DNA from: Fimbriosthenelais zetlandica
Taxonomy: Eukaryota
Reading direction: 5' to 3'
NCBI GenBank assembly: GCA_977030845.1
Contig: OZ365114.1
Coordinates: 14,942,001 to 15,006,000, forward strand
Length of the DNA stretch: 64,000 bases
Shown here piece after piece: positions 22,065 through 63,119 of this stretch. A program made the position numbers and the translations under genes. The notes under the pieces were generated by a model. It worked only from the letters and a program-made list of their open reading frames with translations. It did not search any database and was not told where the DNA came from. Position 1 is the stretch's first letter; each line of letters begins with the position of its first letter.

Positions 22065-22067
<3 letters not shown>

Positions 22068-22105
<38 letters not shown>
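22068..22105. repeat. (AT)19 microsatellite
   Basis: Directly visible perfect dinucleotide run ~580 bp upstream of the start codon. Confidence 0.97.
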
Positions 22106-22680: not shown

Positions 22681-22834
22681 ATGGCATGTGGGAATTTCTT
22701 TGTCTTCGCTCTGACCTGCCTGACTCTAGCTACAAATGTGGATATTTGTTTCTCCGCAGAATGTGCCAAGTCATGCATTGACGAGTACTACATCAGTGCC
22801 CCGTGTGATGCTACCCATGACAAGCGCTGTAAAG
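22681..22834 (+). CDS. Exon 1: MACGNFFVFALTCLTLATNVDICFSAECAKSCIDEYYISAPCDATHDKRCK (signal peptide + half TNFR Cys repeat)
   Basis: ATG at 22681; hydrophobic core FFVFALTCLTLA; C-x3-C-x9-C-x4-D-x2-C; donor AAG|GTAAGC, phase 1. Confidence 0.75.
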
Positions 22835-23349
22835 GTAAGCACATTTACTTCTCTACATTGCTATTTTTAACTGTTACAAATGTAAGTTAAACCAAGGGTT
22901 AAGAATTGATATTTTTCAAGGCAACACATTAAGTAAATTAAGTCTCACCAAATTGTATTAAAATCATGTTGAAATCCGAGGCAGTTTTAGCCCGTACTCC
23001 ATGCAGGATATCTGAATCTCATCCTCACATTGAATTTCCGTCAAATAACATTTACAATTTCAATTACAATTAAAACTTACACCGTGTTTATTTCAACGGC
23101 TGAATCTGGATGCATTTTTAGTGGTTTTGGGAGAAAATCACTTCATGACAAAATGCAATTGCCCACAGCGTTTTAATTGATGATCGCTCAAATCAATTTT
23201 TTCCTTCCCCTCCTGAAATTGCTTTGCCCCTCTACAATTGCTATTTGCTCTCCAGGACGCAAAAAGTTTAGTGTAAAAATAGCTTTTTCGAATTCAAGCT
23301 TCAGATAACTTGTGATTGCTGAAAGATGGCTTGTGATTGACGTTGACAA

Positions 23350-23800
23350 GCATGCGTAAACACTAATTTCAATATTTATCCATCAACTGTCTAAAACCGC
23401 AGTGATTTGCTTTTTCCCTCCTCCTCGAAAGCTTTTCTAATTTGCATTTAAATGTGTTTGCTCTAATCAAAGCAGATTGCAAGTCTGATGTGGTGGCACT
23501 TCTCAAAATCCCACTGAATTGTTGTTTTAATCGAGGATCCAAACCATCAAAGACCAAATCTGCAAGATTTTTTTGTACCATTCTTTGACTGAAATTTGTT
23601 CATTTTATTGTCAAACAATTGTGAATATTTCGAGTCAGATCAGTACACGGTGGCCTTTCCTTGCCATGGCTAATATCGATAAAGTGTCTGCGAATTAAAA
23701 TTCTCTGAAAGCCTGTTTGGATTTACAATTTGCATTACATCGCTAATCCTCCTGAATTACTGGCGTAAAGCAGGGAACGAGATGAAGTTTCGCTAATGAG
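23350..23800 (-). mobile_element. Gypsy-type Gag (capsid C-terminal) fragment
   Basis: LVFDGLDPRLKQQF..DLQSALIRA matches the Gag pattern F..GL...L+.....L..A+..A; stops upstream. Confidence 0.45.
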
Positions 23801-24499
23801 AAAAAAATCGTGTTCACACTAATAGTCATGTTTCTCCTCTCCAGTCTACACATGCAAAACTAAATTCAAGCTGAATAGAATTAAAATCAAGGGGAAAATT
23901 GAGTTACCTGAAGTGAGTATTAAACGAGTGTTGAATTCCATTAAAGAAGTATTGGTTTCGGGCTTGAATACTGGAAGGAAAATCAATATTCCGACATTGA
24001 ATTTAAAGTCACGAAAGTGTGAATAATGTATTTGTCAAATAGGAGCAACCGAAGACGGCCTTTTTCAAGTAAATGTATGCCCCTAGTACATGCAAACAAT
24101 CTCTTGTGGCATGCAAGTGGCATAGAGGTCTTTCTCGACAACGGGATTATCTATACAAAGGATATTTCTCATATTTAGCTTTGCTGCTTTAACTGAGCTA
24201 AATTATTCACTTTGGAGCGTACATAGCCTAACCTACACTAATGATTGTGTCTATGAAGCTATGAAGTTTCATTTCAGTTACCAAAGTTCAAGTATTTTAT
24301 ATCCCTCACCTAAATTCAATATCAGAGAATGTACATTGTATAAGGCCTTGTATCATAACCTCTCATAGCCTTTTGTCTTATCATTGCGATATTATGACTG
24401 AGGGGAAAATATTTCAGAATTTGACAACTGACAACAAGCCACGCTACTAATAACTGCTAGGCTACATTGGGATTCCATAAAACTGTGAGGAACTGGATC

Positions 24500-25600
24500 T
24501 CATTCCGTAAGGTTGCAGTGGATGGCTTCATGAAGTATTTCTCTATCTCGTGTTTCAGCTCCTTTTTACACACACAATGACACCAGTCCTGACAAATCCT
24601 ACGTCAGAGTGTCCTCTGCCTGTTCCATATGCCTTTTTGTTGTCTTTGTAAAGGCTTTTCCTGCTTAGAGGAACTGTACCTTTCATGGTTTTGGAATAGA
24701 ACTAATTTTTGAAATAGTGAACGACCTTCCAGAGGGATTCTCAATACTGGAACAATGTCTTCCAATAACCAGACTCCAATACTTGTATGTAGATGATTTA
24801 TGGAATGATTCGCCAGTATTTGATGAAGTTCGCTATCTTAAATTCTTCGCACGATAATCGCCATTTTGTTTCTTTGACGTCGGTTTAAATGAGCCCAGGA
24901 AGACTGTATAGGGGGTCTCAGAGTAGACGTATATATAATACACATTGCTCCGTGGTCAGTTTCTTGCCCCGCTGTCGGGTCTGACCCTCAAGGGCCTACA
25001 GTGATTGTCTTGCCTCTTGCTAATCCATACATCACCACTCAACAGAGCAGAAATCCCAATCCTCTCAGCTGTTTTCTTGGTGGGGCCCATCTTATCAGAT
25101 ACCATTCCTTTACACCACCCTTGGCTCCTATTTACTTCAATGTTGGACCCGGCTGACATTTGCTATCACACTATATGTGATTTGTGGGAGGAATAACACT
25201 CCCCATAAAAAGGTTAGCGAGCGCTGTGAAGGTTCTTTTATACCAAAAAGCAGGCAAATCCATTCAACTGGAGACCTCCTCTTTCCTTCCACCTTCCAAC
25301 GTTGTCTCTCTAGAATTCAAGAGTCTCATTCAACATGAATATTAACTAAACGTTATTTTGAAGGTTGAACGACCGTATTTAACTTTTTACAAGTCATCAA
25401 TACGGGAAATTGTGCTCTTTGAAATCTTGTCATTTCCGATCGCATGTTTTCTGGCCCTCATCAGCAATTTATTGTCGGCCCCCTCTTGTTACTAAACACC
25501 CATCTGATATTGCAATTGGCGGCAGTTCAGATGACTGAATTACCTGATCATGGGCCTCCATTTACAGCTATTCAGGTTACCTTGATTGATGAGGAGGGCC
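24500..25600 (-). mobile_element. Gypsy RT-RNase H fossil
   Basis: ISRIDDL (25390-25410), LNSRETT, KRTFTAL, RKQLRGLGFLL, GSDP, PLYSL..CEEFK in canonical order. Confidence 0.68.
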
Positions 25601-27100
25601 TGCATTAGGCTAACTTTGATCAGAGAAGGCCGTAATGATTATGAGACAAGGGCACGCCTTTTGATCAAAAGTGAAAGCCCGGCCATCAGCCTGCATGGAT
25701 GATCATAGCTACCCTCAGTCGAAGGCTGCTATAACTTGTGGTAGTAGATTGCCTTCATCGTTCCCTAACCACTAATGTGGCTAGTGTATAGACGCGCTGC
25801 TGCAGCCGTCCCATACCAGAGGAGAAGCCAAAAAATGCTTTTTGACCTGACAAGCTGGTTGGGTTGTGGCGCTTGTGTCATTTGATGGAAGACCTGAGTG
25901 TATTAATGTTAAGATTCATTTCCGTGAATCTTCTCATCTTTCCTCACTTTTTGCCACCCCCGCATGGATGTTCACCTCTATTTCCATTATTTGTCGGGCG
26001 TATGTCAGCTTCTATAGGCAGGTTTTAGTGTTCTTGTGACTACATCGCATGACCTTTCCTGCTGAGCAGGTGACATCAATAGTTTTGTATCTAATGGGGT
26101 GCATGTCCCTCACACCTCAATCAGTTTCCTCCTATCATGGTTCTCCTATATACTAGGGCTCTTCTCATATGAATGAGGAAAGCTCTCCAGTATTTAATGT
26201 AAAACCCAATGGCAGACTTGACATCGAAACGTCTGCCAAATTGTCAATAACAACGTGCCAGTGACATTGCAGAGTCAATTTCAGCCCTCAGAGTTGAATG
26301 TCTAGTTAGGAACATACAGAACAGCTGGCTTCTGTCCCATCGTCTATTTAATATTGGTTATTAAGGCACTCGGCATTCTTCAGCAATGACAGTTCCTCAT
26401 AATATCTATGTATAAGCTGAGCAAAGGAATGTGCGATGGTAGGGGTTGAGCCATTACCATGTCAAAAACTTTCAGCGAGAACATTTCATGCAGGCAAACA
26501 AAAAGAGTTTTCAGCAGCTACATATTTGTATAACTATTTCATGACACAAAGACTGAAATTCATGGCTAAGATTTATTAGTTGTGTTAGACAAAAGAGAAA
26601 GTTGACTTTGTTTACGGTTTGTAATCAGAGTCACCAATCCATGAACATTATCACACCTCCTTCTCTCTTGCTTAGAGACAAACCTTCAATCAAGCCATGC
26701 AAATAGTAATTAGGTCGAGCTGATGTTCACGTCATTGTGACTAATTGGGTTCCCATTAATTGGACATTTTAATTAGAATACACTACTGAAAAGCAGAATC
26801 TGATTGGTGACGGGTTTAGGGGGTAAATAATGAAATTTCCAGTAATTAGAAGAGCAGAGATGTGTCTTGGATAAGATGAGATGAGAGGGATGAAGACAGA
26901 TGAATTGTATTACTCAAGCAGTGCGTGAATCAAGGCCTGGGTGTTTTTGAGAAATAATCGCTCAATGAAAAGGAGGGAAAAAAGGAATGTAATTTACTTT
27001 AATTTAATAATGCCCACCAGGGTGGGGTTGGCACGTCCAGACCCATGGACACCTGGATCAGTCATTGATGAATCCATTTCTACTATTGTTTCAATCGCGT

Positions 27101-27195
27101 GCTCTCTCTCTATCTCTCCATCTCTCTTCCTCTCCCTGTCTCTCGATTGCCCTCTTGCTTCCTCGCCCCCTCTTTCTCTCACTTTCTCTCTCCCT
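27101..27195. repeat. CT-rich low-complexity tract
   Basis: Imperfect (CT)n / polypyrimidine run, directly visible. Confidence 0.85.
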
Positions 27196-28199
27196 ATCGA
27201 TTGCAAATTCATTTAAATCATGAAGATTTTGGCCACACCAGATAACTAATAAGCCGTGTGGAATTGCACAGATTACATTTTATAATCTTCAATTTCAAGG
27301 CCTTTAATTGATCATTATATCAGGGGAGGCATTCCTTTTTTCCTCTTCTTGAAAGATTTCGAAATCCTATATTTGATCCATCTGAAAAACACAATTCATA
27401 ATACTTCCGTTACAAAACATCACCTGCATGCTGGGAGGATATATAGTGAACGAAATTCGCTCCACTTTTTCATATGGAAATTACCTTTTTGTTTTAATTA
27501 TGGTTTCTTAATTAATTGTCGAGATTGAAAAGAAGAGATGTTAATAGCTTTCCATGATGGCTGATGAGTTCGTTATTGTGTCATTCCCTGGGGACTCGGT
27601 CTGTCTGTAGCGAGATAAGTCTGAGCTGAAAGTTTCTTCATAAGAGCTGTTTGATGCCCGAGGGATGCTTCTCTTTATCTTAGAACCACCAAGAGTTGTT
27701 CCCAGCAGAAAACCGCTGGGAGAGCTTTTTCTGACCAGTATGTCTAGTCATCATCAATACCAATTAAAACGGAGAATATAGCTGTTAGGATTATTGCAGA
27801 GGGGATCCTATAACCATGGCCAAGGATTTGTTCCTTTGTGGCCGGGTGGTTGGAGTAACCTTTTTTTCCTCATGCAGAAGAGAACAGGCAATGATGGGAT
27901 TATATTGAACCGAATCATTAAATTAAAGAGTATTATTTTGCCCTGCAGCAACACTTACGTAAATTATAAGAACAGAAACAATATTGAGTCAGAATAGCTT
28001 GGTACATCGCAATGGTCTTGGTTGGCAATGGAGTAAAATACAAATCCAATAATGATATTAATGCAAAATTCTATAGAGTCATTTGCCTTCCCGGAAAACA
28101 ATTCATCACAGAATAGCTAGACCTTATACATCTAAGCTTGATGACCTAGGACCTTCATATGGAAATGGCAAACCTGACCATTTTGACCTGGATTGACCT

Positions 28200-29100
28200 A
28201 CACAAAGCAGAATCAGACTGTATGGGCTTGTCCTGCATGAACCCTCCTGGTCACAGTGTATTTCTGTCACCCTACTACAAGGTCAGAGTCGTCCTAACCC
28301 AGAGGGCTGGAGAGATGGATTGCGTTCCACTGGGAGAAGGACAGTTGAGCTAGTAGATGAGTTGGTCCTACTGATTGCATGATACACACTGATGAACAGG
28401 CACAGACTGATGTTTTTCACACAGGAAGTGAACCTCTGGTAAATTGGGACATTGCCAAGCTCTTGAATATCAATAATTAGATAAGCAGTTTTACATCTCC
28501 AATTTATAAGCAAGGTGTATTGCGGTAAAGGCTGGTCTTGGCACCATTATGCTGTTTGAGTTAATAAAATAATAATGTCAAGACAAATTTGAAATCGGAA
28601 GAAAAGCTTTGGATTGTGATCCTGCATGGGTGCTCATTTTCTCTGTCCGGTGTTCAATGGTAATAAAAGTCCCTTGAAGAACTCCACAAACCCCTGGAGA
28701 AAGGCAATTTCACTTCTAACTCCATACCACTAAAAGCCAAGTGTTATTCTCTTGGAGTTTAGTGCCAAGTCGGTACTGAAGTAGACACTTCTCACTCACA
28801 CAACCCTGGCGCTTCCACTATTCTATTGGGTTACGGCTACCGGAGCATTACTTGGTTGTTCATATGGCTTTGGGCAGCAGTGGCATAGTAAGTCCCACCA
28901 TAACTTCATAAATTCCTATACCTCCCATGAATGAGCAAAAGGTCTTGCCACCCATTGGTGCTCGACCAAGTTCTTGGTGCTCGTTAATGAATTGTGACCA
29001 GCCTCCGACCTCCTGTAGAAAGAGCACTTCTGGTCACCCAGGAAGTAAGTCAAGTAGAATGCTCAATGAATAGTCAGGATAATTTTAGGCATTTCCCCGC
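28200..29100 (-). mobile_element. Ngaro-group (DIRS order) RT fossil
   Basis: APMGGKTFC (cf. LPMGC..SC), GLCE..TP..LAFSGMELEVKLP (cf. LC..LGVP..GP...L.FLGIELD..LP), MVPRPAF (cf. VV.PGRAF). Confidence 0.5.
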
Positions 29101-29991
29101 TGGGGCCCTCGAGACTGGGGACCTCAGAAGAGCTCCGTCCTGCCTAAGTTCACCGTATTATGACTCTCAATGGAGTCTGTGACGGCTCCTTGAAGATCGG
29201 AATGGGAGGTGTTGGAGAGAGCAGTTTGCATATTGTGGTATTCTGTAGATACACATTGGCTTTTGTTGCTCGCACCTTCAGGACCAATATTGATGGAAAG
29301 CAGAGGGGATTGGGTGACTGACCCATGTTTAGTGGACTCTCGGGAATGGCCAGTGGTCGAGCTGCTGATGGACTGAGAGTGGAATGAGTTGTGACCGGTG
29401 AAGCAGGCTATCAAGTCACTCGGCTCTCACTCTATATGCCTAGACAGTAGATAGCATTTAGGTGGCTGCTTTACACTCCAGACGCGGTGGGATAATTATT
29501 TCCACCAGGTAGTAGTACTCCGTCCATGTTGCAGCCGTTGCGCCATCACAAGGGAACACTCGATCAGACCTGCTGACGCAACCCATGAAAAATACACCTC
29601 CAAGCATCCCAAGGCTAATACATTATCATCGCTTTTCGCGGAACATTTTCAGTCATCATGTCCGCAAGGTCAAGGCTCATTAAAGGAGATACTGTTTCTC
29701 GTTATATTATATACATCTTTATATAATTTATTTCCTCCGGTGTGATTCTGGCTTATAGGTCAGACCCAGGCTGAGAAAGATATATCACCGCAGTTGGATC
29801 TATAGATGACATCGTGTTTACATTTCATAAATCATTATATTCCATTAGGAACATGGCCTCCCTGTGCAGCAATCTGATGGTCCAGTCCTATTTATTTTAT
29901 AAACATGAAAAACTAATGAGAGTATGATTATCTATGCAATTTGCTTGAAATATGGGCCCCGGGAGATTCGGGAAAGCCCATCATAAATTAT

Positions 29992-37949: not shown

Positions 37950-38760
37950 TTCCGTCACTAACAGTTATCTCAATTTCTTTTGCAGCATGCACACCAAGAT
38001 GTCCGCAGGGGAAATTCGAATTCACCCCATGCCATGGAACTCAAGATCGGCAGTGCAGAGGTAAGGCTTCTTCCTGATTACCATTCTTACTCTGGGAGAC
38101 ACCTACCGGCAGTCTATCATAGTTTGGCAGTATTCTGATGGAATCGTTCAAAACGTGACGCTCCTTTTCATCCATTGGACTGGATCAATGGCGGTTTGGG
38201 GCAGAAATTCTCTGACTCGATCCCCTTCAGTAACTGTGTCCTCCACAAGCTGCCTGAGGCATTGTACTGGGTCGCGGTGTCACTTTTGAAGAGGGTCCTT
38301 GACTGTCGTTTGGGGAAATAACACATCCATGCCCTGCAATAATACCCTACGGTCAGGCGTGGCTTGAAAAGGAAGCAGAAATGGTTACCTTAGATCTGTC
38401 AGCCGTATATTACACCAATTAAGCAAACAGCGTGCTCCACCGATCACCCCCCTTTTTTGCTCCCAGGCCTCTCCACTTTTTGATTGACTTTCTTCGCCAT
38501 GTGCCATCTCTTCACAGTCCTTTTCAGCATGTGGATTTACATCGATATTTGGCCGGGAGGGCCCGGCTGTCCATCACTCTGGGTCTCAAAACCAGCTTCT
38601 CTCCAAGCTGTTAGAATCGACTGCCTCAGATCATATTCTCAGTGCAAATGCGACCAGAAAATAATAAGAATGCCAGCTGAAAAGATTGTATTTGGGAAGG
38701 ATATTGTTAAGCACTCTTCCATGGTCTAAACGTCTGTGCACATGGTAGTGGAGATCTGCT
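37950..38760 (+). mobile_element. Gypsy RT-RNase H fossil
   Basis: PQGKFEF (38003) with frameshift into MPW..SAVQR; LKRKQKW..CQ..IKQ..P..LLP; HRYLAGR. Confidence 0.68.
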
Positions 38761-40169: not shown

Positions 40170-40310
40170 ATATCAAGGACCTGCCAGAAGTACGTGTGTC
40201 GGATAACATCATCTATGAGGATCGACAGAAAGCTAAGCCCGTCTTCTCTTACTTGCTTCATCAGACCCAAAGCACCGGCCCTCTAACACACATGCTGGAA
40301 CTGAAGAGAG
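40170..40310 (+). CDS. Exon 2: (D)IKDLPEVRVSDNIIYEDRQKAKPVFSYLLHQTQSTGPLTHMLELKR
   Basis: Acceptor tttttttgtgattacag; donor GAG|GTGAGC; phase 1-1. Confidence 0.85.
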
Positions 40311-42769: not shown

Positions 42770-44620
42770 ATTAAAACTGGGCAGCAATTCTATACTGATG
42801 TCATTGAAACTGCTGCTGTTATCCATGGTGCATGGGCTGACTACAATATAAAAACATTGAATGCAAGCTCATACATGGACCCTCCACAATCCCACCCCTT
42901 CTCCACCCACCCAGCACCTCCCCCCAACCCCCCTCCCCTCCTGTGTTGGAGACATTAGAGTGCGCAATTATGAAACTTGAATCTCTAATGTGCTGGTGCA
43001 ATAATCAGGAGGAAAAGTCAGGATTTAAGATATCTTCCCCAGTCCATGTGGTTGGCACCCCCTCCCCTCCTGTGTGTGGGGAGACATTGGAGGGCACGGG
43101 TATGAAACTTTGCAAGAATTGCAAGTCATGAATATCTAGTGGATATTTCAAATGACCTGGAACATTAAATGGATATCTACCAGGGATCATTGCCTTGTGA
43201 TTCTTGCAGTGATTCTTGCACGTAGAGTTTGTCCACAAGACCATGAACTGCAAATATATCAATTGCTGCCTGAAAATGATATCAAGCCAGAATCGGAAAG
43301 CAAAGCAAGCATTTGGCCTCTCCCTCAACGGAATGTGGACCCGCATGCACCTCATTCCTGTAGTGTAGGTGAAGGGTATCTGCAACCCCAGCCACTTCCT
43401 GTGTGGCGATACATTGGAGGATACGGGTAGGAAACGTTGCAAGAATTGCAAGTCATGAATATCTAGTGGATATTTCAAATGACCTTGTACATTAATTGGA
43501 TACCTACCAGGGATCATTGCCTTGTGATTCTTGCAGTGATTCTTGCGTGTAGAGCCTGTCTACAAGGCCATGAACTGCAAATATATCAATTATTGCTGCC
43601 TGAAAATGATATGATGCCAGAATCAGAAGACAAAGCAATCAGTTCACCTCTCCTTCAACAGAATGTAGACCCACATTCACCCTAGTCCATGTACGTGAAG
43701 GGTAGCTACCCCCCGGCACTTCCTGTGTGGGGAGACATTGAAGGGTACAGGTAGGAAAATTTGCAAGAATTGCAAGTCATGAATATGAAGTGGATAACTC
43801 AAATGATATGATACTTTAATGGAATACCTACCAGGGATCATTGCCTTACTATTCTTGCAGTGATTCTTGCAAGTGGACCTTGTCTACAATTGCTTGAAGA
43901 ATATGAGAAGTTGCAAGAATCGGACGGCAGAAGTCTCCCCTGTCCGTGTAGATGGCTGACATTTGTAACCCCTGCCCTCTGCTCTCCTGTGTTGCAGATA
44001 TTAGAGGATACGGCTACGAAACTTGACGCAAATTGCAAATAGTGAATATCTAGGGGATATATCTATTGAGTTATAATATAGGATACTATTGAAGTATTGA
44101 CCAGGGATCATTGCCTTGCAATTCTTGCAGTGATTCTTGCAAGCTTATAGGTAGCTGGCTGACCTCCTGTGTACGCAGAAATTGAGAAGACATATTGACA
44201 TAATCTCATGCTGACCCAAATATTCAAAGTATCAATTTCAGGATTATCAATATTACTCTGATCACTGTTATTTTGCAAATGGTAGTATAGGGTACAATAA
44301 CAAACTGTTGAGAATATTGACCATATGTGGGGCATTCTATCCCCTCTTGCTCCATTCCCCTGATGCCATTGATCAATATGGACGTGACTGTGGGCATAGT
44401 CATCAAATACAGCAGTGGAAGCATACAGCACAATGGATGAGGGACAATCGTACTCTAGAGAGAATTTCAAGAGGGAATGAATGTCAGTGAGGCATTTCTA
44501 AGTCCCTTACATCCCACACATGTATGTATACTGCACGTATGTGAAATATATCCCCTGGATATCATACTGAAAGCTCTGGACAATACTGAAATGACTATTA
44601 TGACTAAGGGTTGCAGGTTA
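42770..44620. repeat. Diverged tandem array (periods 327, 324, 270 bp, then shorter) with a ~100-bp imperfect palindromic core
   Basis: Anchor cagggatcattgcctt at 43181, 43508, 43832, 44102; anchor tgcaagaattgcaagtcatgaatat at 43111, 43438, 43762; degenerate flanking copies. Confidence 0.9.
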
Positions 44621-46743: not shown

Positions 46744-46922
46744 GGAATGGCTTTTCTGTTTCCGTCAACCTCAAGGAAAGCAACCTGGCGCCCCTTTTCC
46801 AAGCAGTGGACCATTCGGACTCCAACGACAACAGTGGTTTCTATGGCGATCTGACAATTACCCAGCAGTACTGTCCGTACCCCGTACCGGAGAAATACCA
46901 ACTCTCCCTTGTCCTTCACACG
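46744..46922 (+). CDS. Exon 3: (G)NGFSVSVNLKESNLAPLFQAVDHSDSNDNSGFYGDLTITQQYCPYPVPEKYQLSLVLHT
   Basis: Acceptor ttcctttttgcag; donor ACG|GTACGT; phase 1-0. Confidence 0.88.
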
Positions 46923-48148: not shown

Positions 48149-48405
48149 GGCATGACCACACGGGCCAAGTATTACAACTGCAATAAAAAGAAGAGAGAGG
48201 CACATGGTAAGTGTGCCCGGGAGACAGGCTACTACCTTGACCCCCACGAGCCGTGTGAGACCTACAGCCAGTTCGGGAGGCTTCCTGCCATCAACCCAGA
48301 GGGCTGGAGTGTGCTCTGCACTAGGCCTGGCACGCTCAGCAATACATTTGGGGTCAGTTCTGAGCTGGAAGACCTCTCAACTATGTTCATCGACAGAACA
48401 GTCAA
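48149..48405 (+). CDS. Exon 4: GMTTRAKYYNCNKKKREAHGKCARETGYYLDPHEPCETYSQFGRLPAINPEGWSVLCTRPGTLSNTFGVSSELEDLSTMFIDRTV(K)
   Basis: Acceptor tttgtgaattag; donor CAA|GTAAGT; phase 0-2. Confidence 0.82.
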
Positions 48406-49199: not shown

Positions 49200-49412
49200 A
49201 TGCGCAGAGCAGCGTACCAACTGTGATGCATGTACCGTGATGTGTGCTCGCACCATGAGTAACCGTCAAGGTTCACATCGCTGTAACATCACCGGTGAAG
49301 ATGCTGACAATGGAGAATCACCCCGCCTACAACACTGCTTCAGCTGTTGTGGCAAACAGGACTGCTCTAAGATCTGTGAGGTCTATCATAATTCAGAATG
49401 CGAGCTCGTCAG
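49200..49412 (+). CDS. Exon 5 (Cys-rich): CAEQRTNCDACTVMCARTMSNRQGSHRCNITGEDADNGESPRLQHCFSCCGKQDCSKICEVYHNSECELV(R)
   Basis: Acceptor ttgtattttgtag; donor CAG|GTGAGC; phase 2-2. Confidence 0.9.
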
Positions 49413-49917: not shown

Positions 49918-50127
49918 GTGTGTGACAGGCAACCTGGCTGAGTTTGTTCTGTCTCCTGTCTTCTCTCACCGTGGCACCGTGTTTGGCTGTCACGTCGAAC
50001 CGAAGCCACAGTACAAGATCTATGACATTACCTACAATGTCCGCTACAAGGGCAAGCCAGTCTCCAGCCGCAGTCTCCGGGCACAGAAGATCTATGAGGG
50101 ACACCATCCTGACAAGTCCATAGATGA
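49918..50127 (+). CDS. Exon 6: CVTGNLAEFVLSPVFSHRGTVFGCHVEPKPQYKIYDITYNVRYKGKPVSSRSLRAQKIYEGHHPDKSID(E)
   Basis: Acceptor cccatccatcaag; donor TGA|GTAAGT; phase 2-2. Confidence 0.88.
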
Positions 50128-51189: not shown

Positions 51190-51386
51190 GCACGACTTCC
51201 TGAAGGTCTACTATGGTTCAGAGGTGAAGGGTGCTGTAGATTTTATAGAGGGAGACAGCTCGATGCGGACATTCACTGGTGGGTATTATTCAGATCAGGG
51301 CATGTCCGTCACCGATATGGAGGTCACCACTCGTACCCTCTCCGTCCGTCCACGCAAACCCTTTGGCGTCAGCACAGAATTCTGGA
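51190..51386 (+). CDS. Exon 7: HDFLKVYYGSEVKGAVDFIEGDSSMRTFTGGYYSDQGMSVTDMEVTTRTLSVRPRKPFGVSTEFW
   Basis: Acceptor tctcttccctcgcag; donor GGA|GTAAGT; phase 2-1. Confidence 0.9.
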
Positions 51387-52000: not shown

Positions 52001-52306
52001 AGCGACAGGACTGTGACACTGACGCCCTCTCTGAACTCCTCCTAGCTAATAGTAACCCGCCCCGCACTGACCCATACTTGCCGGACCAACAAGTCAGCAT
52101 CCAGTTTGTCAACAATGGAGTCTACCGGATATTCAACCGGACCACTGTACCTTACATCTACTTTGAGGTGCCGGCCAATAAATCTCTCCTCCAGCCTCTA
52201 TATGATAACACCACTGTGAGAGATGATGGGACATTGAAGGCGGAGATACTGCGCTCTGAGAGTATGTGGACACTGAGACTGCAGGGAGAACTGGAACAAT
52301 GTCCAG
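52001..52306 (+). CDS. Exon 8: (K)RQDCDTDALSELLLANSNPPRTDPYLPDQQVSIQFVNNGVYRIFNRTTVPYIYFEVPANKSLLQPLYDNTTVRDDGTLKAEILRSESMWTLRLQGELEQCP
   Basis: Acceptor ttttaccttcctccag; donor CAG|GTGGGC; phase 1-1; three N-glycosylation sequons. Confidence 0.9.
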
Positions 52307-52527: not shown

Positions 52528-52752
52528 GTTTCTTCTCTGTCAAGGTGACTGATCCATCGTATGGTGACCAGCCACTCTTTGTGTATGATGTTGGCGTTAA
52601 TTGCCCACGTCTCTTCAAGATTGACTTTGGCATCCCCACAAACGGGCCAGATAACTACGCCAAACGATTCCGTGTCGAGGTATCCGACACCTACCGGACT
52701 ATCAACATGATGGTTTATAAACCTGCTCCAAATATGACTAAGGAAACATATG
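52528..52752 (+). CDS. Exon 9: (G)FFSVKVTDPSYGDQPLFVYDVGVNCPRLFKIDFGIPTNGPDNYAKRFRVEVSDTYRTINMMVYKPAPNMTKETY
   Basis: Acceptor atttttttgtcag; donor ATG|GTACGT; phase 1-1. Confidence 0.9.
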
Positions 52753-55700: not shown

Positions 55701-57867
55701 ACAATATTCATTTTATGAATAGTTGCTACGGTCTTATCAAGTGTGTTTTCAATACTAGAACTTAATCTACACTCTCAAATTCTTCATTGTTCGCTGGGTC
55801 TTAATAGATTATTATGAATATGTTTTAAATTAAACATTATATTAAAAAAACTCCCATTGGTTTCCCTTTTATAAACATTCCCAGCTGTGCATGCAAAGAA
55901 CTTTTGATTTATTTTCGAACATATTTCTGAGCTAGGATCGCATGCATCAGCTTTCGAGATTATGGCTTCCTAGGAAAAATGAGACAGCTTTTTGTTGCAC
56001 TTTAATGTCAAGATCAATCTCTATACCCTCATGTGTTGCATTTTCATATTTGCAAACTCCGGATATCCCCACATTCTATGGTTTACATGGACTTGTAGTT
56101 GAAGCAATTCCTTTGAATTGAAAAGTCTAGATAAGATATCTTCACCGCGAACAATGAGTATGATTAAACAGAGAATATTGACTTAAGTCTGGATTCCGTC
56201 AGTCCATGTACCATATTTGAAGGGGATGATTTGATATTCAATACAATGTGCGCTTGGAGTGCTGATGTTGGGATTCACGGCCAAGTCGCATCCATCCCAT
56301 TCTAATGAGGTGTCTATGCTAGCTCCGTCGAAATGATCGGATGGCATAGACAAATTTATTCAGAGACAATAGAGTCGTCTAGGCAATTCACTTGCATTGC
56401 GCCGTCAGTCGAGCAACCGAAGACAAAGGTTAAAGCCATCTACATTATCTTGATAGCCTAGTGTTACATTACTGGATGGATGGCATTGGCAAATCGATTA
56501 ATATAGACAGTGGAGTCATCCCGATAATCTTGTTACATTCCGCCTTCTATGGAGCAAATGTAGATAAACGTTGTTAACGGTACATATTCTCATCTGTCGG
56601 TTTGATGCAATTAATTGGATTAGCCACTCTATTAAAATTGGTCTACCCAGTTGGTCGAATGCCAGTTTCCTACGAATTCACATTGGTTGTGTATACGATA
56701 ACGTTGATTATTTGTATGAGCCATAGACATTATTTCAAACAGTCATCGCGTCTTTTCCCAGCACATCGCCTCCAAGTGTTCATTGTTTTTTCTGCTCATT
56801 GGTATTGTAACTCTCTCCTTTATTCGATGAAATATTAGAATGGACGATCACTATTTCACTGATTTTATAGGGCAGATATTCCTGCAGTAAAAGATTGCTT
56901 TGTCTCTGCAATACAATTATCATACCCTGTCCCATACATAATGTTTTTCTAACAAATAATGCAAGAATTCTAACCTATAAATGATGGGAAATAGTGTAAC
57001 ATTTCCATTTCGTTCAACAATTTATCAACTTGTATTTGTTTCAATAAGATATACATGAAATTTGATGGGATTGTCTCCAGAAGATAGTTATTTTATTGAA
57101 CTCCTTATTCATCATTAATATTAATATCATTTGATATTTCTCAGAGGGTTGTGTAATTATTGTAGTGTTTGCTGAGAAGTAATAACCTAGCAACTTAAGA
57201 TCTTGCTCCATCTAACTTATGAAGAAAAATAATTATATGTGTGATTTTGCAATTCTTTGTTGTAAGGTAAATTAAAGTGATTGAAAGGTGGCAATAAGAT
57301 CTTAAATAGTTGGGTTCAAATCTAGTAATGTTTTTATCACATGTGAACAAAGTACACATATCTTATAGAATTCTTCCTCGGATAATGCATGCAGTAATTA
57401 CAGCTTTTGTTTCATATAAAGATAAAAGAAATGAAGAAAGAGAATTTCCACGGCCGATAAATGACGATTAATTTATTCACTATATCCTGTAAATTGAGTT
57501 CACCCATTTTCCCCATTAGAGATATTTCACTTCATGATAGAACCATTTACTTTCTCCCAAAGAAAAATCCAGAAAAACCACCCCCTCTATTGGTATAGAA
57601 AAGAATTCTACTGTGCCCTTTTATGCTATTGTAATTTCCTGTATGCATGCTCAATGAGAATGGCATGGCATTGCACCATTGATTGCATTTGAATATAGAA
57701 AGAATCTAGAATAATATTATTGTATTTCCTTTTCTCATTCGGTGATGGGTTGATGTTGAATCGTATACATGTTATATTGCACTGCAATGATGTAATATTT
57801 GTCGTAGTGATGTGAGTGATTCTCCAAAGAAAGGAAATTGTCCTAATAAATACCGATGATGTTGCAG

Positions 57868-57996
57868 ATGCCAAACTCACATATGAAAACAAAGGAGAAA
57901 CGGAAATGACTGTCTTCACCCCAATAATTGCTGTCCTTTGTGTGGTTATAAGCTTCTTGGGCCTTTTGCTCTTCGTTGGCTTCATCACTGAACCAG
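57868..57996 (+). CDS. Exon 10 (TM1): (D)AKLTYENKGETEMTVFTPIIAVLCVVISFLGLLLFVGFITEP
   Basis: Acceptor gatgttgcag (weak pyrimidine tract); donor CAG|GTAGAT; phase 1-1; 24-residue hydrophobic run. Confidence 0.82.
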
Positions 57997-58243
57997 GTAG
58001 ATTACATCGTGTCTTATTAAAGTCCAGGTCAAAGGTTGCTTAGTTGACTTTCTCAGGAGTTTGACTCCTACATTGATCTTTGGCAGTCAAAATTCCCAAC
58101 AATTATAGAAATCACTTTTAATTATGTTTTTTTTAGGAATTTTTACCCAAGTAATGTAATTCTTCCCCAATGATTATTTTGGTAATTTTGATGAACTTTT
58201 TTTGTTCTACTGATTACAATGTTGCCAATTTTCCCATTTGCAG

Positions 58244-58394
58244 GTCTTCCTGGGCATCCGCCAAAGAAAATAATCGAGAATAAAGTCCATTCTCAACATT
58301 TGTTGTTTGTCGTCTGCTATGTGACTTTTAGAGCTGCCTACTCTCTAGCGGTTACTTTCACTGTGCTTCTTTTGCTTATCAGATTTGCTAATAG
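58244..58394 (+). CDS. Exon 11 (TM2): (G)LPGHPPKKIIENKVHSQHLLFVVCYVTFRAAYSLAVTFTVLLLLIRFAN(R)
   Basis: Acceptor ttttcccatttgcag; donor TAG|GTGAGT; phase 1-2. Confidence 0.88.
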
Positions 58395-58617
58395 GTGAGT
58401 CGTAAATAATGTTTAGGATCTTTCTCTAGCCACTAAGTCAATTTTGCATTGGACAACAAGACGCAATCTTTCACCATGCTGAATAATTTCGAGTTTACAT
58501 CTTAACATTCATTGAAGAAGATAAGAAACATATATACTAAATTGTAAGTCTTCATAACATTCCTTGTAAAGTACTTGTAAAATGGATGGAGTAAATTTTC
58601 GCCATCTAAATTTACAG

Positions 58618-58804
58618 AGAATCTGTAGGGACTATCATGGAGTTTGATCGTTACGTGGATACTGCAGACAATGTGCAGAAGAGTGAAGTGGGAAAGATCC
58701 AGGCATTTGTAATGGAGGAATTGAACAGGCAAAATCAACTGGCCAACCAAACAAAAGTTCAGTGTGAAGCAAAACTACAACAACTGCAAAATGTTCTCGA
58801 AGAG
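58618..58804 (+). CDS. Exon 12 (coiled-coil-like): ESVGTIMEFDRYVDTADNVQKSEVGKIQAFVMEELNRQNQLANQTKVQCEAKLQQLQNVLEE
   Basis: Acceptor ctaaatttacag; donor GAG|GTGAGC; phase 2-0. Confidence 0.87.
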
Positions 58805-58876
58805 GTGAGCTGCCACAAAAACAACTATAATGGGACATGGACAAAATCATGTGTTTTACGACTCCTCATTAATGAC

Positions 58877-58961
58877 ATCTACAGTCTGTTCACTCTAAGT
58901 TGATCCGAAACCACCATACATATGTACTGTAGTTTCGGATCACAGTGAACAGACTGTAGAT
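58877..58961. repeat. 85-nt inverted repeat / hairpin in intron 12
   Basis: 58877-58894 is the exact reverse complement of 58944-58961 (18 bp), and 58901-58911 of 58932-58942 (11 bp); 20-nt loop. Confidence 0.92.
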
Positions 58962-58996
58962 ACAAACTGATCCATGAAACAAAATCTTTTTTGCAG

Positions 58997-59109
58997 ACTA
59001 AACAGCAGTTACGTGTTGAAGACACGGAGGAAAGATTAGTCTCTCAGGTGGCGTTACAGTATACCCGGCGTATGCTGCTCAATCTCACTAATGACATCAT
59101 GAAGTTTAA
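58997..59109 (+). CDS. Exon 13: TKQQLRVEDTEERLVSQVALQYTRRMLLNLTNDIMKF(K)
   Basis: Acceptor tcttttttgcag; donor TAA|GTAAGC; phase 0-2. Confidence 0.88.
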
Positions 59110-59217
59110 GTAAGCAGACTACTCAAATAATGTATTATATATCTAATATAATTAGACCTACGTGAAGAAGTAATAAAAAACATGTAACTCATTTCTTTGC
59201 AATGTTTCATCCCACAG

Positions 59218-59429
59218 ACAAGAGTTCACAGCCTATGCACGGAAGTCTGTCGATCGACTCACTAGGAGTATTGTTCAGACGTCGAGCGCCTTGCAGGGGA
59301 ACAAATGGTTGGCTGGAGCCAAGGTCATTTACGACGTCGTACAAAGCAAACGAGCTGCACAAGGCCAGAACACCAAGCCCTTCATGGACTGGGTGGGAAT
59401 ACAGCAAGAAGTCGAGAGGCTGTCAGTTG
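59218..59429 (+). CDS. Exon 14: QEFTAYARKSVDRLTRSIVQTSSALQGNKWLAGAKVIYDVVQSKRAAQGQNTKPFMDWVGIQQEVERLSV
   Basis: Acceptor tttcatcccacag; donor TTG|GTGGGT; phase 2-1. Confidence 0.85.
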
Positions 59430-59535
59430 GTGGGTTTCTTTTGTTCTGTCTAACCCATCCTTTAACTTCAGAGTTAACTGCAGTCTTTTGTCAAATTTTT
59501 CAGTGACATTAACTTTTTTACTGCTTTACTTATAG

Positions 59536-59662
59536 ATCTGGCCATTGAGAACTTCCCGATGCCGAACCTGACCGAGTTTCTCTCCCTTCCACGCCCTAAG
59601 ACCAACCACCACCAGTCTAGTGTGCCTAGCATTGAAGAAGTCAGCCTGCCAAGAAATCAATG
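59536..59662 (+). CDS. Exon 15: (D)LAIENFPMPNLTEFLSLPRPKTNHHQSSVPSIEEVSLPRNQ(W)
   Basis: Acceptor ctttacttatag; donor ATG|GTAATG; phase 1-2. Confidence 0.8.
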
Positions 59663-59925
59663 GTAATGTGTCCACCCCAGTAATGCTTGTCCTCTCTTAT
59701 CTCATCCTGGGTCTTTTTCTCTGTCAGACAGATGATTCTAGACAGTTTCGTAGTGAAGAGGTTGATTTGTTCTCTTCTTCAGTTCTGGGCTCATACCATC
59801 CTCCCATGGCCGGCTGTCTCTTACTCATTAGAAACTCTCTGGGCCAGTGTGGCTACAACTGGTCGTGCCTATAGGGAGGATGGGCTCATTACTGCTCTAC
59901 TAAAACTTGGACCGTCTTTCTGCAG

Positions 59926-60155
59926 GTATTTCCAGTTTGAGAAGACCCCTGACGGTTCAGGCGCTGGAGCTGCAGCCACAGCCAAGAAGAAGGGTAAGAT
60001 CGACACGAGTCGCATCATGAGCTGGACCTCACTGCTCATCATTCTTATCTTTGTGGATATCATTTGGTTCCTCCACCGTATGGCCAGATCCTACTCTACA
60101 GCCAAGATGATCCTCTATGGTGTACCTTACTACATAGACTGTAAAAAAGCACCAG
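59926..60155 (+). CDS. Exon 16 (TM3): YFQFEKTPDGSGAGAAATAKKKGKIDTSRIMSWTSLLIILIFVDIIWFLHRMARSYSTAKMILYGVPYYIDCKKAP
   Basis: Acceptor gtctttctgcag; donor CAG|GTACGA; phase 2-1. Confidence 0.87.
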
Positions 60156-60424
60156 GTACGAGATACTTTTTGACTTATGAATTGAATATATATGCCCCCT
60201 CGAAAATAATAGCAAATTTAATGCATTTTAAGACTTTCTAGTGGATTTGTGTGTCTCTTTGGCATAATCAGTACAGCCCAAATGTCGGAGGATGGAGACA
60301 GGCGTTTTTAAACCCCCAAAGCCTAAGTTTCCTGCGAAAATCAAGAGGGTTGGCAGTCCCGTGCGTGGGTTGACAAAGCTACCAGGTTTATGTGTAACAT
60401 ATGTTTAAAATCTCTCCCCTTTAG

Positions 60425-60519
60425 CCGACTCAAGATCACCACAGCGAGGTCAGAGGGTGGGACGAGGGCACCAATCACCCTACAGATGTCTCAACTTCCT
60501 GAAAGACCTCAACCTCAGG
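60425..60519 (+). CDS. Exon 17: (A)DSRSPQRGQRVGRGHQSPYRCLNFLKDLNLR
   Basis: Acceptor tctctcccctttag; donor AGG|GTAAAG; phase 1-0. Confidence 0.83.
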
Positions 60520-60851
60520 GTAAAGAGACATTCATAACCACTCAACCATTTATCATATTGTGTATTTTTTTAAATTTGTCTTCTGAAATGGATGATTATC
60601 TTCAGCCTTCATCCCCATTTTCAAACAATTTCATAAACAAATTCAAGACACTTACCGGGTATTGTGTGATTTGTATCGAAGTCCATAAAGAAACAAGATG
60701 CCTTTTAAATAGTCTGCCATATCCAATTCCCTTTCATCTTCCTAAAGGCCTGTTTTACCATGTCCTCTGTGAATACTGATGCTCCAGAACACGTCTTCCT
60801 TTTTTAACAGGGACTTATTTTTATGACCGTTCTTTTTGTTCTCTACTAAAG

Positions 60852-60986
60852 GTGATGAAAACTGAATTTGTCCCTAAGCTTGTTGCCACAGCGACAGCCT
60901 GCTGTGCCATCTATCTTGTGTTAAGAGTATCGGCCCATCTCCTCACTGTGAAGACTCTTGCCTCCGTTGGATATTTTGATACCCTG
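60852..60986 (+). CDS. Exon 18 (TM4): VMKTEFVPKLVATATACCAIYLVLRVSAHLLTVKTLASVGYFDTL
   Basis: Acceptor tttttgttctctactaaag; donor CTG|GTGAGC; phase 0-0. Confidence 0.87.
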
Positions 60987-61093
60987 GTGAGCATTCCATA
61001 ATTCACTTTAGTACTCTCTTTTGCCACTTTCATGCTTTATTGTCCGTTCATTATTTCCCGGTAGTGAACGGGTGAAAGTGACAGAAGTCGGTC

Positions 61094-61156
61094 ATGGTCA
61101 GGGTTCAAACCCTCCTCTTTCATACCAGAAGCAGGCACTCTACCACTGAGCTATGA
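61094..61156 (-). mobile_element. tRNA-derived SINE head (Pol III A and B boxes) in intron 18
   Basis: Reverse complement: atagctcagtggtagagtgcctgcttc..gagggtttgaaccctgacc, with A box TAGCTCAGTGG and B-box-like GGTTTGAACC; no complete cloverleaf. Confidence 0.65.
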
Positions 61157-61236
61157 AGACAACTAATGTACAATATGCTGATCAGTGACAAACACAGTCT
61201 AAATCTGCCTTAAAATCACTGATTAAATGTTTCTAG

Positions 61237-61544
61237 ATTGCTCCAATGGAGACCAGCTACAGGCTCGCTAAAACCCGCATCAAGACCAATGCCTACCGTA
61301 TCAACAAGTTTGAGTACCCCTTCTATGAGGAGCTGGTCAATGTTCGCACCAAGCGCTACCAACTGATGCTGGAGATGTACCGGGACCTGCAGAGATCCAA
61401 CAACATCCTCCATGACTCTGAGTTCTGCGCCTGGAAGAAGATGCTTCACCCCAATGAAAAATGTAACTGCACCACGGCCAAGACGGTGAAGCTGCACTTT
61501 GAGGGATGTGAACTTCCCCCTGTCACTCCACAACCCTACAGAAG
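61237..61544 (+). CDS. Exon 19: IAPMETSYRLAKTRIKTNAYRINKFEYPFYEELVNVRTKRYQLMLEMYRDLQRSNNILHDSEFCAWKKMLHPNEKCNCTTAKTVKLHFEGCELPPVTPQPYR(R)
   Basis: Acceptor atgtttctag; donor AAG|GTGAGT; phase 0-2. Confidence 0.9.
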
Positions 61545-61758
61545 GTGAGTGATTGATGGTCACTAACCTTCTCAGCGTCATCTCTTTTCTGTGGGATAGA
61601 TTCATAATCATGAATAGTAAAATTGTTAATAACTGCTTTGTTTTAAGCAGACAAGTATTTCATAAGCCAATTTTTTCCAGCATGTGAAGATATACTTAAC
61701 ATATCTAAAATTAGTCAATCTTAAGCCTTGTAAATAATTTGGGATTTTCTTTTTGAAG

Positions 61759-61923
61759 GCGAGACTTCTCTTCCCAGAAAGATAAACTGAGTGCGTCCAT
61801 GGTGCCCTACATCAATTCTGCACGTCAGATTGTTATGGATACGAGTCATCTCGTCCTCATCTTTGTTTCACTGCTGGTGCTTGTTGACATACTCGGGTCT
61901 GTAACATGGATTTATCTCAAACG
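61759..61923 (+). CDS. Exon 20 (TM5): RDFSSQKDKLSASMVPYINSARQIVMDTSHLVLIFVSLLVLVDILGSVTWIYLK(R)
   Basis: Acceptor ttttctttttgaag; donor ACG|GTAAGC; phase 2-2. Confidence 0.88.
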
Positions 61924-63037
61924 GTAAGCATTAGTAACAGTATCAATGGCATATCGCAATTACAATGCCATTAACATGAAAAAGAGACAGGTCCCGCTTT
62001 AATGCAAACATGCAATTTGATTTCCGTCTCACTTTTTGTTCTCGTATTGTTCGAGATTATGTGTGAAGAAAGCTTAATAATTATTCAACTTATTTTACAC
62101 GCTTTTCTAATTTTAATGTTGTGTGCACGCACCTTAATAAAATGATCAATGTTGAGCTTCTTCCGTGCATCAATTGCTTCTTGTATAGATATTTAAAAAC
62201 GCTTGCTTCATTGCTTATGTATTTTCTTCTGTTGTCATTGATATAATTTGGAATTTCTTTCTATTCAGTTCGTCACATTATAAGTTCTTATTGTCGTTTA
62301 TTTCAGTTGTTCTTTCAAACTTTTCCCCATGTACAGAGTTCCAAAAGAACTTGTACTTCCTGAGAGTACGCCTGATGTGTTACGAACAGAGTCATTGGTA
62401 CAAATAGATTCTAGACTTGATTACATTATGTTCTCATTAGGGGTTTGCAGTTTGATAGTGTGTCCTTAATTTTCATTAACAAATAACACCTAAACCTTAT
62501 GGGAAAAATCACTACACTCACATTATATAATTTTTTATTTCATTTTGCCTTGTATAGTTATTTGATTAAATCTAGCCCCTCTTTAGTAGTCACTCTATAG
62601 ATCTACAAATCAAAGTTAGAATTAGATCATCACAATCATCTAGGCTTGATGGTGGAGCCGAGGAAAACGGAACATTTATTTTCTAAATAAGTTGTTGTTG
62701 GTAACTGGTTTGTTTATTTTGTGCCTGGATATTTTTAACCCAGGTAGCCTACTAATAATTAACGTAGGCTAAGAGGAGGGGTTTACCTAAAATGCCTGGT
62801 TCTAATATTAATTTGTAAATACATTTACTCAATCTAGAGTGTTCTCTAATATTATTTCAATATCAGGTACCTGTTCATTTACGGAAGCTATCGAAAACTT
62901 GTATCTTATTGTAGGGAATCGATTGTTTCAGTCACTATAACAGTTACTATTTCCAACGTCAATTTAACAATATAAACAATTTAACAATATAAAACCACAT
63001 ATATATTCTAATATTGAAATCCATTTGTTCACCTTAG

Positions 63038-63119
63038 GTTCAACTTGTTGCGGTTGAAACCTCTCTTTGAGGTTGAACACTGTGAGCAGTACCCCGAGTC
63101 AAGTCAAGCCTGTGGCTGA
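63038..63119 (+). CDS. Probable terminal exon 21: FNLLRLKPLFEVEHCEQYPESSQACG*
   Basis: Acceptor ccatttgttcaccttag; phase 2 matches exon 20; TGA at 63117-63119; base composition resembles the other exons. A rival phase-2 candidate lies at 62307-62469. Confidence 0.62.

Follow-up and report, generated by a model that had tools for sequence, protein, structure and literature searches.

A multi-pass membrane protein of four spiralian phyla with a predicted class II fusion protein ectodomain

What is the large ectodomain that a long, intron-rich gene of Fimbriosthenelais zetlandica attaches to a membrane module with five transmembrane segments (TMs), and could the protein fuse cells? The window analyzed here is a gap-free stretch of 64,000 nucleotides with about 40% G+C (contig OZ365114.1 of assembly GCA_977030845.1, positions 14,942,001 to 15,006,000 of the forward strand), and all coordinates are counted from its first letter. 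On its + strand, open frames between 22.7 and 63.1 kb encode the peptides of a multi-exon gene with the terminal stop codon at 63117-63119. Few animal cell-cell fusogens are known, and the fusogen for most bilaterian fusion events is unidentified. Structure prediction gave the ectodomain the fold of class II fusion proteins (fusexins), which would mean that a fold known from this superfamily occurs here in a new family and a new architecture. Based on this predicted fold, the chances seem about even that the gene represents a multi-pass branch of the fusexin superfamily and encodes a candidate cell-cell fusogen.

The gene was rebuilt by scoring donor and acceptor pairs on reading frame, splice consensus and fit to a homolog, and the similarity of the window DNA to orthologs was mapped by tblastn. 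The homolog used as a guide was P0036, a relative of 2063 residues that is encoded on a JGI contig and has the appearance of an annelid-like transcript. The resulting model consisted of 22 exons on the + strand (22760-63119), separated by introns of up to 15 kb. Every exon had an AG acceptor and a GT donor, the phases were compatible at all junctions, and the product was free of internal stop codons. The product comprised 1269 residues when counted from the first conserved codon and 1296 residues when counted from an ATG at 22681. A first-pass annotation of the same DNA had proposed about 1270 residues in 21 exons; the multi-exon gene stood, but about 25 residues, roughly one small exon, had been missed when counting from the ATG.

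Predicted fold of the ectodomain

The ectodomain was modeled with AlphaFold2 on P0036 residues 860-1440, which correspond to window exons 4-10, with an alignment of 12 rows that contained the orthologs and the window's own exons. The model had a mean predicted local distance difference test score (pLDDT) of 72.8 and a predicted template modeling score (pTM) of 0.60, and the pLDDT reached 80-90 in the beta-rich half. A Foldseek comparison with the PDB gave 240 matches at E<=1e-3, and all of the best 50 were class II fusion proteins, with probabilities of 0.94-1.00 and alignments that covered the whole model. The best matches were C. elegans EFF-1 (E 4.6e-8) and archaeal Fusexin1 (Fsx1; 5.7e-8), and further matches included alphavirus E1, Atlas virus Env, hanta-, phlebo- and nairovirus Gc and flavivirus E. 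Against the predicted viral structures in BFVD, Foldseek gave 141 matches at E<=1e-3, and the best of these were phenuivirus-like glycoproteins at 2e-10. A structure search independent of Foldseek was made with VIA-align over 48,161 PDB chains. Among its best 50 entries, only four were aligned over more than about 100 residues, namely Arabidopsis HAP2 (Z 9.3, 277 residues), Chlamydomonas HAP2 (Z 8.8, 222 residues), Fusexin1 (Z 8.2, 288 residues) and EFF-1 (Z 8.1, 322 residues), where the two HAP2 entries were 5ow3 and 5mf1. In a structure comparison, the HAP2 entry 6e18 was aligned over 300 residues. The first-pass annotation had described the ectodomain, about 620 residues by its count, as receptor-like, and the structure searches point instead to a class II fusogen fold. 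Its suggestion of a candidate fusion protein was a good guess, but the main reason to think of fusion is the predicted fold of the ectodomain and not the membrane module.

Three beta-rich domains, namely a central barrel, an elongated domain and an Ig-like domain III, were recognizable by structure comparison in the model, which was built on an ortholog that is 58% identical. Exon 3 (40170-40310) encodes a linker and the beginning of the conserved core, with 56% identity to P0036 residues 833-880 in tblastn and matching junctions. With exon 4 (46744-46922), the class II-like ectodomain enters its first beta strands, and the beta-rich core continues in exon 7 (49918-50127) and exon 8 (51190-51386), all three placed by tblastn, junctions and the ortholog model. 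Exon 9 (52001-52306) contains a further part of the core and the beginning of an Ig-like last domain, the equivalent of domain III, and the remainder of this domain is encoded by exon 10 (52528-52752), as judged from the junctions and the structure comparison. The Ig-like domain corresponds to model residues 450-548 and is followed by a stem of about 35 residues and then by TM1. In VIA-align, residues 450-548 gave many single-domain matches to Ig-like domains, and domain 3 of P. berghei HAP2 was matched to residues 452-551.

Two loops of the ectodomain stood out. Exon 5 (48149-48405), placed by its junctions and the ortholog model, contains a cysteine-flanked loop with F-G-R-L-P and a Trp at 48254-48319. 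In the alignment columns, the G and the P of this loop were invariant among the four orthologs, and the loop lies in a stretch of the model with low pLDDT. We propose it as a candidate membrane-contacting loop. Exon 6 (49200-49412), which is 74% identical to P0036, encodes a cysteine-rich helical insert (model helices 167-231) with an invariant acidic loop, D-x-x-x-N-G-x-S-P-R-L, at 49282-49338. Its role could be that of a Ca2+ site or of a tip loop.

HAP2/GCS1, the eukaryotic gamete fusogen, was the best multi-domain match in the VIA-align search. Its ectodomain is likewise rich in disulfides, with helical elements within the elongated domain and an Ig-like domain III that leads into a stem and a TM. 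In contrast to the present protein, HAP2 has a single TM (PMC9259645; PMC2766252), whereas five follow the ectodomain here, cysteine modules stand ahead of the core, and the orthologs carry two more TMs or hydrophobic segments before the ectodomain. There was no sequence similarity to HAP2, no Pfam HAP2-GCS1 match at E<=10 and no match to its PDB sequences. As of 2009, HAP2 was described as lost from most bilaterians (PMC2766252). EFF-1, which like AFF-1 is a somatic cell-cell fusogen of nematodes, gave the top Foldseek match to the PDB (probability 1.0) and the longest VIA-align alignment; it is a cellular protein, and an obvious hydrophobic fusion loop was seen neither in EFF-1 nor in the present protein. 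However, EFF-1 is a single-pass protein of about 650 residues without sequence similarity to the window protein, and it has neither the cysteine-rich helical insert nor a pentaspan module. Fsx1, the second Foldseek match, resembles the present protein in its helical, atypical domain II and its possession of more than one C-terminal TM (three in Fsx1), and Fsx1 binds Ca2+ near its loop region (for the three TMs and the helical domain II, see PMC9259645). It differs by a fourth domain, by TMs that are not separated by large loops and by its prokaryotic origin, and it also showed no sequence similarity. The viral class II glycoproteins, namely phenuivirus and hantavirus Gc, alphavirus E1, flavivirus E and Atlas virus Env, gave the lowest E-values over the whole ectodomain model, and the orthologs have a precursor-like order of hydrophobic segments upstream. 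In contrast to these viral proteins, the present protein is encoded by an intron-rich cellular gene that four phyla have conserved, it lacks a companion glycoprotein domain of the size seen in viruses, and it carries EGF and TNFR-like modules and a pentaspan module. In the literature, we found no description of a spiralian fusexin or of a multi-pass animal fusexin.

Orthologs, gene integrity and the 5' end

The best exon, exon 20 (61237-61545 as the query), was compared by phmmer with 1.8 billion representative proteins, and 33 relatives were found, annotated as uncharacterized throughout. They included full-length proteins of Lingula anatina (1956 residues), Tubulanus polymorphus (2046 residues) and Argonauta hians (1970 residues) as well as a 608-residue fragment from Helobdella. 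Based on this one phmmer search and a cluster look-up, the gene was found in annelids, molluscs (a cephalopod), brachiopods and nemerteans, which are four spiralian phyla; word-indexed protein searches added only the fragment P0037 and missed known relatives. The spliced model was 56.6% identical to P0036 over 1276 columns (P0036 residues 784-2050) without large gaps. The identities to the Lingula (P0034, residues 625-1900), Tubulanus (P0024, residues 800-2031) and Argonauta (P0028, residues 724-1962) proteins were 31%, 33% and 28%, respectively, and the window model was collinear with all four orthologs from end to end. Of the residues that were invariant among the four orthologs, 117 of 127 were retained in the window copy, and this included all 24 invariant cysteines. 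Thus, the comparison of sequences confirmed a single gene that is intact and under constraint.

The first-pass annotation had also stated that one gene joins the large ectodomain to the C-terminal five-TM module. In addition to the collinearity, P0036 and P0037 each consist of one uninterrupted open reading frame (ORF), on contigs of 6.9 and 5.2 kb, and these frames span at least 16-22 exons of the window gene. Because single ORFs span what are this many exons in the window, we take the two contigs to derive from mRNA. The P0036 transcript was recovered in a second sample as well. At the level of sequence, we consider the joining of the ectodomain exons to the TM exons in one gene to be settled. 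A separate observation was made on a metagenome contig of 1032 bp (Ga0081606_1202583), where positions 601-789 encode a fragment about as long as a single exon, with 71% identity to the beginning of the ectodomain core. This contig probably represents genomic DNA from a further animal that is annelid-like.

Ahead of the ectodomain core, the window encodes two TNFR-like cysteine modules, to which the orthologs add EGF modules. Exon 1 of the part inside the window (22760-22834), placed by tblastn and by junction scoring against P0036, has 75 nt in phase 1-1 and encodes a module of 25 residues with four cysteines. Exon 2 (37986-38060) encodes the second cysteine module and has the same length and phase. 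Exon 2 matched Pfam TNFR_c6 below threshold (E 0.0012, 19.7 bits, cut-off 29.4), and the orthologs scored about 20 bits, also below the gathering score. When the exons and five orthologs were compared with Pfam at E<=10, only EGF and weak TNFR matches were obtained. We take the TNFR_c6 match as a likeness only, and a weak one.

The beginning of the gene in the window required a different reading from the one first given. A signal peptide had been placed at 22681-22759, which indeed reads M-A-C-G-N-F-F-V-F-A-L-T and onwards from an ATG whose Kozak context is favorable, with an A at position -3 and a G at +4. Yet the same stretch is pyrimidine-rich, contains CTGAC twice as possible branch-point motifs, and terminates in TTTGTTTCTCCGCAG, followed by AA. 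In tblastn, the similarity to the orthologs began only at 22759-22762, directly after this CAG acceptor, with the first conserved exon having the phase of the next cysteine-module exon. Furthermore, all four full-length orthologs have 620-800 additional N-terminal residues ahead of this point. It is likely that the exon at 22760 is an internal exon and that 22681-22759 is the end of an intron. The ATG at 22681 was set aside as a certain start codon, given the acceptor-like sequence and the upstream residues of the orthologs; with its Kozak context, it is a possible alternative first exon of a short form.

In the orthologs, the upstream part begins with a signal peptide, followed by a conserved segment of about 100 residues with a motif of the type I-R-T-N-Y-K-G-S-V-x-F, a TM, about 450 residues of low complexity, a second signal-peptide-like hydrophobic segment, and then EGF, calcium-binding EGF and further TNFR-like modules. 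This layout with two hydrophobic segments was common to P0036, P0034, P0024 and P0028 (residues 1 to about 800), and a shorter Lingula isoform (P0011, 1840 residues) was without the first TM. The upstream parts of the orthologs were not found at positions 1-22700 of the window, either by tblastn at E<=50 or with a hidden Markov model of the N-terminal parts against all six-frame ORFs. Because the introns of this gene reach 15 kb, the 5' exons most likely lie outside the window. The gene is probably truncated at its 5' end by the window edge, and the window would then hold the C-terminal two thirds of a multi-pass plasma-membrane glycoprotein of about 2000 residues rather than a full protein of about 1270 residues, as had been proposed. 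Likewise, the TNFR-like module would not be the N-terminal tip of the protein, since the orthologs continue upstream with further modules.

In the upstream 22 kb (1-22680), there was no ORF recognizable by Pfam, and the G+C content rose to 0.47 between 14 and 16 kb. About 600 bp upstream of the ATG at 22681, I-Y-I-Y-type ORFs were explained by a (TA)n microsatellite at 22066-22105, which is about 40 bp long.

The membrane module

Hydropathy showed five peaks, at residues 672-690, 715-744, 989-1007, 1073-1100 and 1246-1264 when counted from the ATG. These are the same five TMs as in the first-pass annotation, with an offset of about 25 residues. Exon 11 (57868-57996) encodes a short stem and TM1 (57915-57983), and exon 12 (58244-58394) encodes a short, basic cytoplasmic loop and TM2 (58300-58380), both as placed by junctions and hydropathy. 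The extracellular loop between TM2 and TM3, about 245 residues in length, is encoded by exons 13-16 (58618-58804, 58997-59109, 59218-59429 and 59536-59662), and its end is found in exon 17 (59926-60155), where TM3 (60023-60073) is followed by H-R-M-A-R. This loop contains three N-glycosylation sequons and one invariant Cys, and in the ortholog model it forms long helices (56-237). The cytoplasmic loop between TM3 and TM4, of about 65 residues, includes exon 18 (60425-60519), which was placed by its junctions and a small tblastn match to P0036 residues 1823-1837. TM4 (60867-60923) lies in exon 19 (60852-60986), for which tblastn, junctions and hydropathy agreed. The best conserved exon, exon 20 (61237-61544), is 71% identical to P0036 and encodes the extracellular loop between TM4 and TM5 with three invariant Cys and the motif C-E-L-P-P-V-T-P at 61507-61530. 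TM5 (61850-61918) lies in exon 21 (61759-61923), again placed by junctions and hydropathy. Exon 22 (63038-63119) encodes the basic cytoplasmic tail and the stop codon; it is 93% identical to the end of the Helobdella protein and has a matching junction. The tail after TM5 has about 32 residues with two Cys and is without a RING-like zinc finger.

Hydropathy, sequons and the positive-inside rule agreed on a topology with the N-terminus outside, five TMs and two large extracellular loops of about 245 and 150 residues. Nine sequons were present (NIT, NRT, NKS, NTT, NMT, NQT, NLT twice and NCT), all in segments predicted to be extracellular, and basic residues followed TM1, TM3 and TM5. This topology places both long helical loops of the pentaspan module outside the cell, where the fusogen-like domain is also predicted to lie. 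On these points the first-pass annotation held up well: the sequons were exactly the set it had listed, the basic residues followed the TMs it had named, the helical TM2-TM3 loop kept its length, the C-E-L-P-P-V-T-P motif was present in the TM4-TM5 loop, the tail lacked the RING-like element of DCST and SPE-42, and the layout was the N-out pentaspan one of prominin and Tweety.

The module was modeled on P0036 residues 1425-2063, with moderate quality (pLDDT 70, pTM 0.44). In this model, TM2 and TM4 extend into helices of 70-100 residues that return to TM3 and TM5. In an ESM feature search, Prominin clusters ranked highest and made up 23 of 100 matches (0.89, 190 shared features), followed by Tweety (20), PRM1 (6) and Dcst2/DC_STAMP (3). 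When the predicted fold was compared with AFDB by Foldseek, orthologs of the fungal plasma-membrane fusion facilitator PRM1 stood at the top, aligned over nearly the full length, from TM2 to the C-terminus, with E 2e-3 to 0.5, probabilities of up to 0.9 and template modeling scores (TM-scores) of 0.1-0.26. More than 20 of them led the fold search of Swiss-Prot, and PRM1 took four of the top seven places in the AFDB cluster search. One uncharacterized protein in AFDB was matched at a probability of 0.97. Human DCST2 was found at rank 25 (E 0.43). In the PDB, the searches with the module returned nothing above chance, and a wide VIA-align search gave generic helical bundles. The widest PDB alignment was to TTYH2 (7rtv; Foldseek E 4.7, VIA-align Z 6.1, 263 residues) and was within the range that helical proteins reach by chance. 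In the four orthologs there was no match at E<=10 to Pfam DC_STAMP (PF07782), Prominin (PF05478), Tweety (PF04906) or PRM1 (PF27758).

The module is one with the prominin/Tweety layout and a weak likeness to helical-loop membrane proteins, some of which work on protrusions or at sites of fusion, and by sequence it is a member of none of these families. It shares with prominins and TTYH proteins the outside N-terminus, the five TMs, the two helical extracellular loops and the cytoplasmic tail, and their clusters were its nearest neighbors in the language model. It differs from the working definition of a prominin, which asks for two small intracellular loops of fewer than 25 residues and for sequence homology to annotated prominins (PMC11405016), in that the second such loop is about 65 residues long and the Pfam match is absent. 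A distant homology between Prom and Ttyh proteins has been proposed (PMC11405016). The 30 best matches of the fold search in Swiss-Prot included neither family, and the extracellular N-terminal part is not short here, with about 650 residues or more. The tentative likeness to PRM1 consists of a core of four TMs, two helical outer loops and a predicted fold that may be similar from TM2 to the C-terminus, at marginal E-values. PRM1 and DC-STAMP/DCST are families that act in cell or gamete fusion. Membership of DC-STAMP, to which the protein had first been related, was rejected; neither the exons nor the four orthologs matched DC_STAMP at E<=10, DCST2 ranked low in the fold search, and the RING-like tail of DCST proteins is absent.

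Proposed function and alternative readings

The reading of the gene as a multi-pass fusexin and candidate cell-cell fusogen has several points against it. The fold comes from a single AlphaFold2 model of an ortholog, built on a shallow alignment. No sequence method, neither Pfam at E<=10 nor a profile search of PDB sequences nor ESM features, tied the ectodomain to HAP2, EFF-1 or viral glycoproteins; the ESM feature search of the ectodomain was uninformative, and atlas shape searches returned noise. No hydrophobic fusion loop was located, and the best conserved loop is acidic. No class II fusogen described in the literature we searched has five C-terminal TMs or cysteine modules ahead of domain I. 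All matches of the membrane module fall within the range that helical proteins reach by chance. Finally, the global TM-scores of the ectodomain against class II proteins were only 0.13-0.21, with root-mean-square deviations of 20-30 Å, such that the folds and the order of the domains match but the overall pose does not. The class II crystal forms used in the comparison are post-fusion hairpins, and we therefore read the low scores as reflecting a different pose of hinged domains. The claim made from the model is that of the same domains in the same order, and not of the same shape.

A more far-reaching proposal, which we put forward tentatively and with rather less than an even chance of being right, is a fourth branch of cellular fusexins beside HAP2, EFF-1/AFF-1 and Fsx1. 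It would be a spiralian-wide multi-pass fusogen of about 2000 residues, combining a class II ectodomain, a prominin/PRM1-like module and a precursor-like N-terminal part, and it would drive somatic or gametic cell-cell fusion in annelids, molluscs, brachiopods and nemerteans. For the main reading of a multi-pass fusexin, we propose that fusion would proceed in the class II manner: with its tip, the elongated domain would engage either the opposing membrane or a partner copy, trimers would then form, and domain III and the stem would fold back and pull TM1 toward the target membrane. The prominin/Tweety/PRM1-like module might place this machine on curved protrusions, or it might act as an in-chain companion that holds the ectodomain in the pre-fusion state, comparable to prM, E2 and Gn or to MAR1 for HAP2. 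The second hydrophobic segment of the orthologs is a possible signal-peptidase site, and the mature fusogen would in that case begin there. If the class II fusion fold is real, research on animal fusogens would gain a concrete and directly testable candidate in a cellular gene that is conserved across four spiralian phyla. It would also be the first single chain to join a fusogen fold to a module of the protrusion-shaping type (prominin, Tweety) or the fusion-assisting type (PRM1, DC-STAMP), and it might shed light on the positioning and restraint of class II machines that have no separate companion protein.

The alternative that survives best, although it appears fairly unlikely, is that the class II fold is real but that fusion was lost. 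The old fusogen scaffold would then serve as the rigid extracellular arm of an adhesion or recognition receptor, or of a prominin-like protein that shapes protrusions. Such a function would suit the nearest neighbors in the language model, since prominin and Tweety bend membranes rather than fuse them (PMC11405016). Binding modules of the TNFR and EGF type ahead of the core would suit it as well, as would the acidic and polar character of the most conserved ectodomain loop. On the other hand, the order of domain III, stem and TM that is needed for the fold-back is retained, and the complete set of invariant cysteines across four phyla is what would be expected of a mechanically loaded ectodomain. 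Nor does the loop decide against fusion, because EFF-1 fuses cells although it, too, lacks a hydrophobic fusion loop.

A second alternative concerns the origin of the gene and is compatible with either function. We consider it unlikely that the gene is a domesticated viral envelope gene, captured as a bunyavirus-like Gn-Gc precursor before the spiralian phyla split. The phenuivirus-like glycoproteins did reach lower E-values than EFF-1 (2e-10 vs 4.6e-8), and the N-terminal order of the orthologs, from the signal peptide and the ectodomain segment of about 100 residues through the TM and the low-complexity region to the second signal-peptide-like segment, recalls a precursor that is cut by signal peptidase. 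However, the gene has at least 22 spliceosomal introns and orthologs in annelids, a brachiopod, a nemertean and a cephalopod, and the search made without Foldseek was headed by the cellular fusexins HAP2, Fsx1 and EFF-1. In addition, we know of no viral counterpart to EGF/TNFR modules and a pentaspan module. The finding is relevant to a long-standing question, namely whether hosts and viruses have exchanged their cellular fusexins and class II glycoproteins.

The reading of the first-pass annotation as a whole, a remote DC-STAMP/prominin relative of about 1270 residues with its own signal peptide and a TNFR-tipped receptor ectodomain, now appears improbable. It gains from the five TMs and the loop spacing, which were confirmed, from the Prominin, Tweety, PRM1 and Dcst2 clusters as the nearest named neighbors in the language model, and from the Kozak context of the ATG at 22681. 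It is opposed by the absence of any DC_STAMP, Prominin, Tweety or PRM1 match in Pfam at E<=10 and by the rank of DCST2, by a signal peptide that falls on a textbook acceptor region while the orthologs extend far upstream, and by an ectodomain with a specific known fold that had not been foreseen. An artefact, the false joining of two adjacent genes that separately encode a secreted or single-pass ectodomain protein and a protein with four or five TMs, is very improbable: the intron between exons 10 and 11 is long (5.1 kb) and its acceptor weak, but uninterrupted ORFs on transcript-like contigs cover both parts, four independent gene predictions from four phyla have the same order, the phases fit at all junctions, and a separate ectodomain would be without a membrane anchor after domain III.

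The acceptor (57868) and the donor (57996) of exon 11 were the least certain splice sites of the model. The acceptor has a poor pyrimidine tract, and two donors, at 57996 (CAG/GTAGAT) and at 58008, both preserve the frame, so that the loop between TM1 and TM2 may differ by four residues. Elsewhere in the window, ten long ORFs in the introns and the upstream 22 kb gave no Pfam match, and Rfam gave no match. In the intron of 6.4 kb that separates exon 3 from exon 4, a tandem array at 43073-43889, which consists of 2.5 copies of a 327-bp unit with 84% matches, gives rise to several similar ORFs on each strand, none with a Pfam match.

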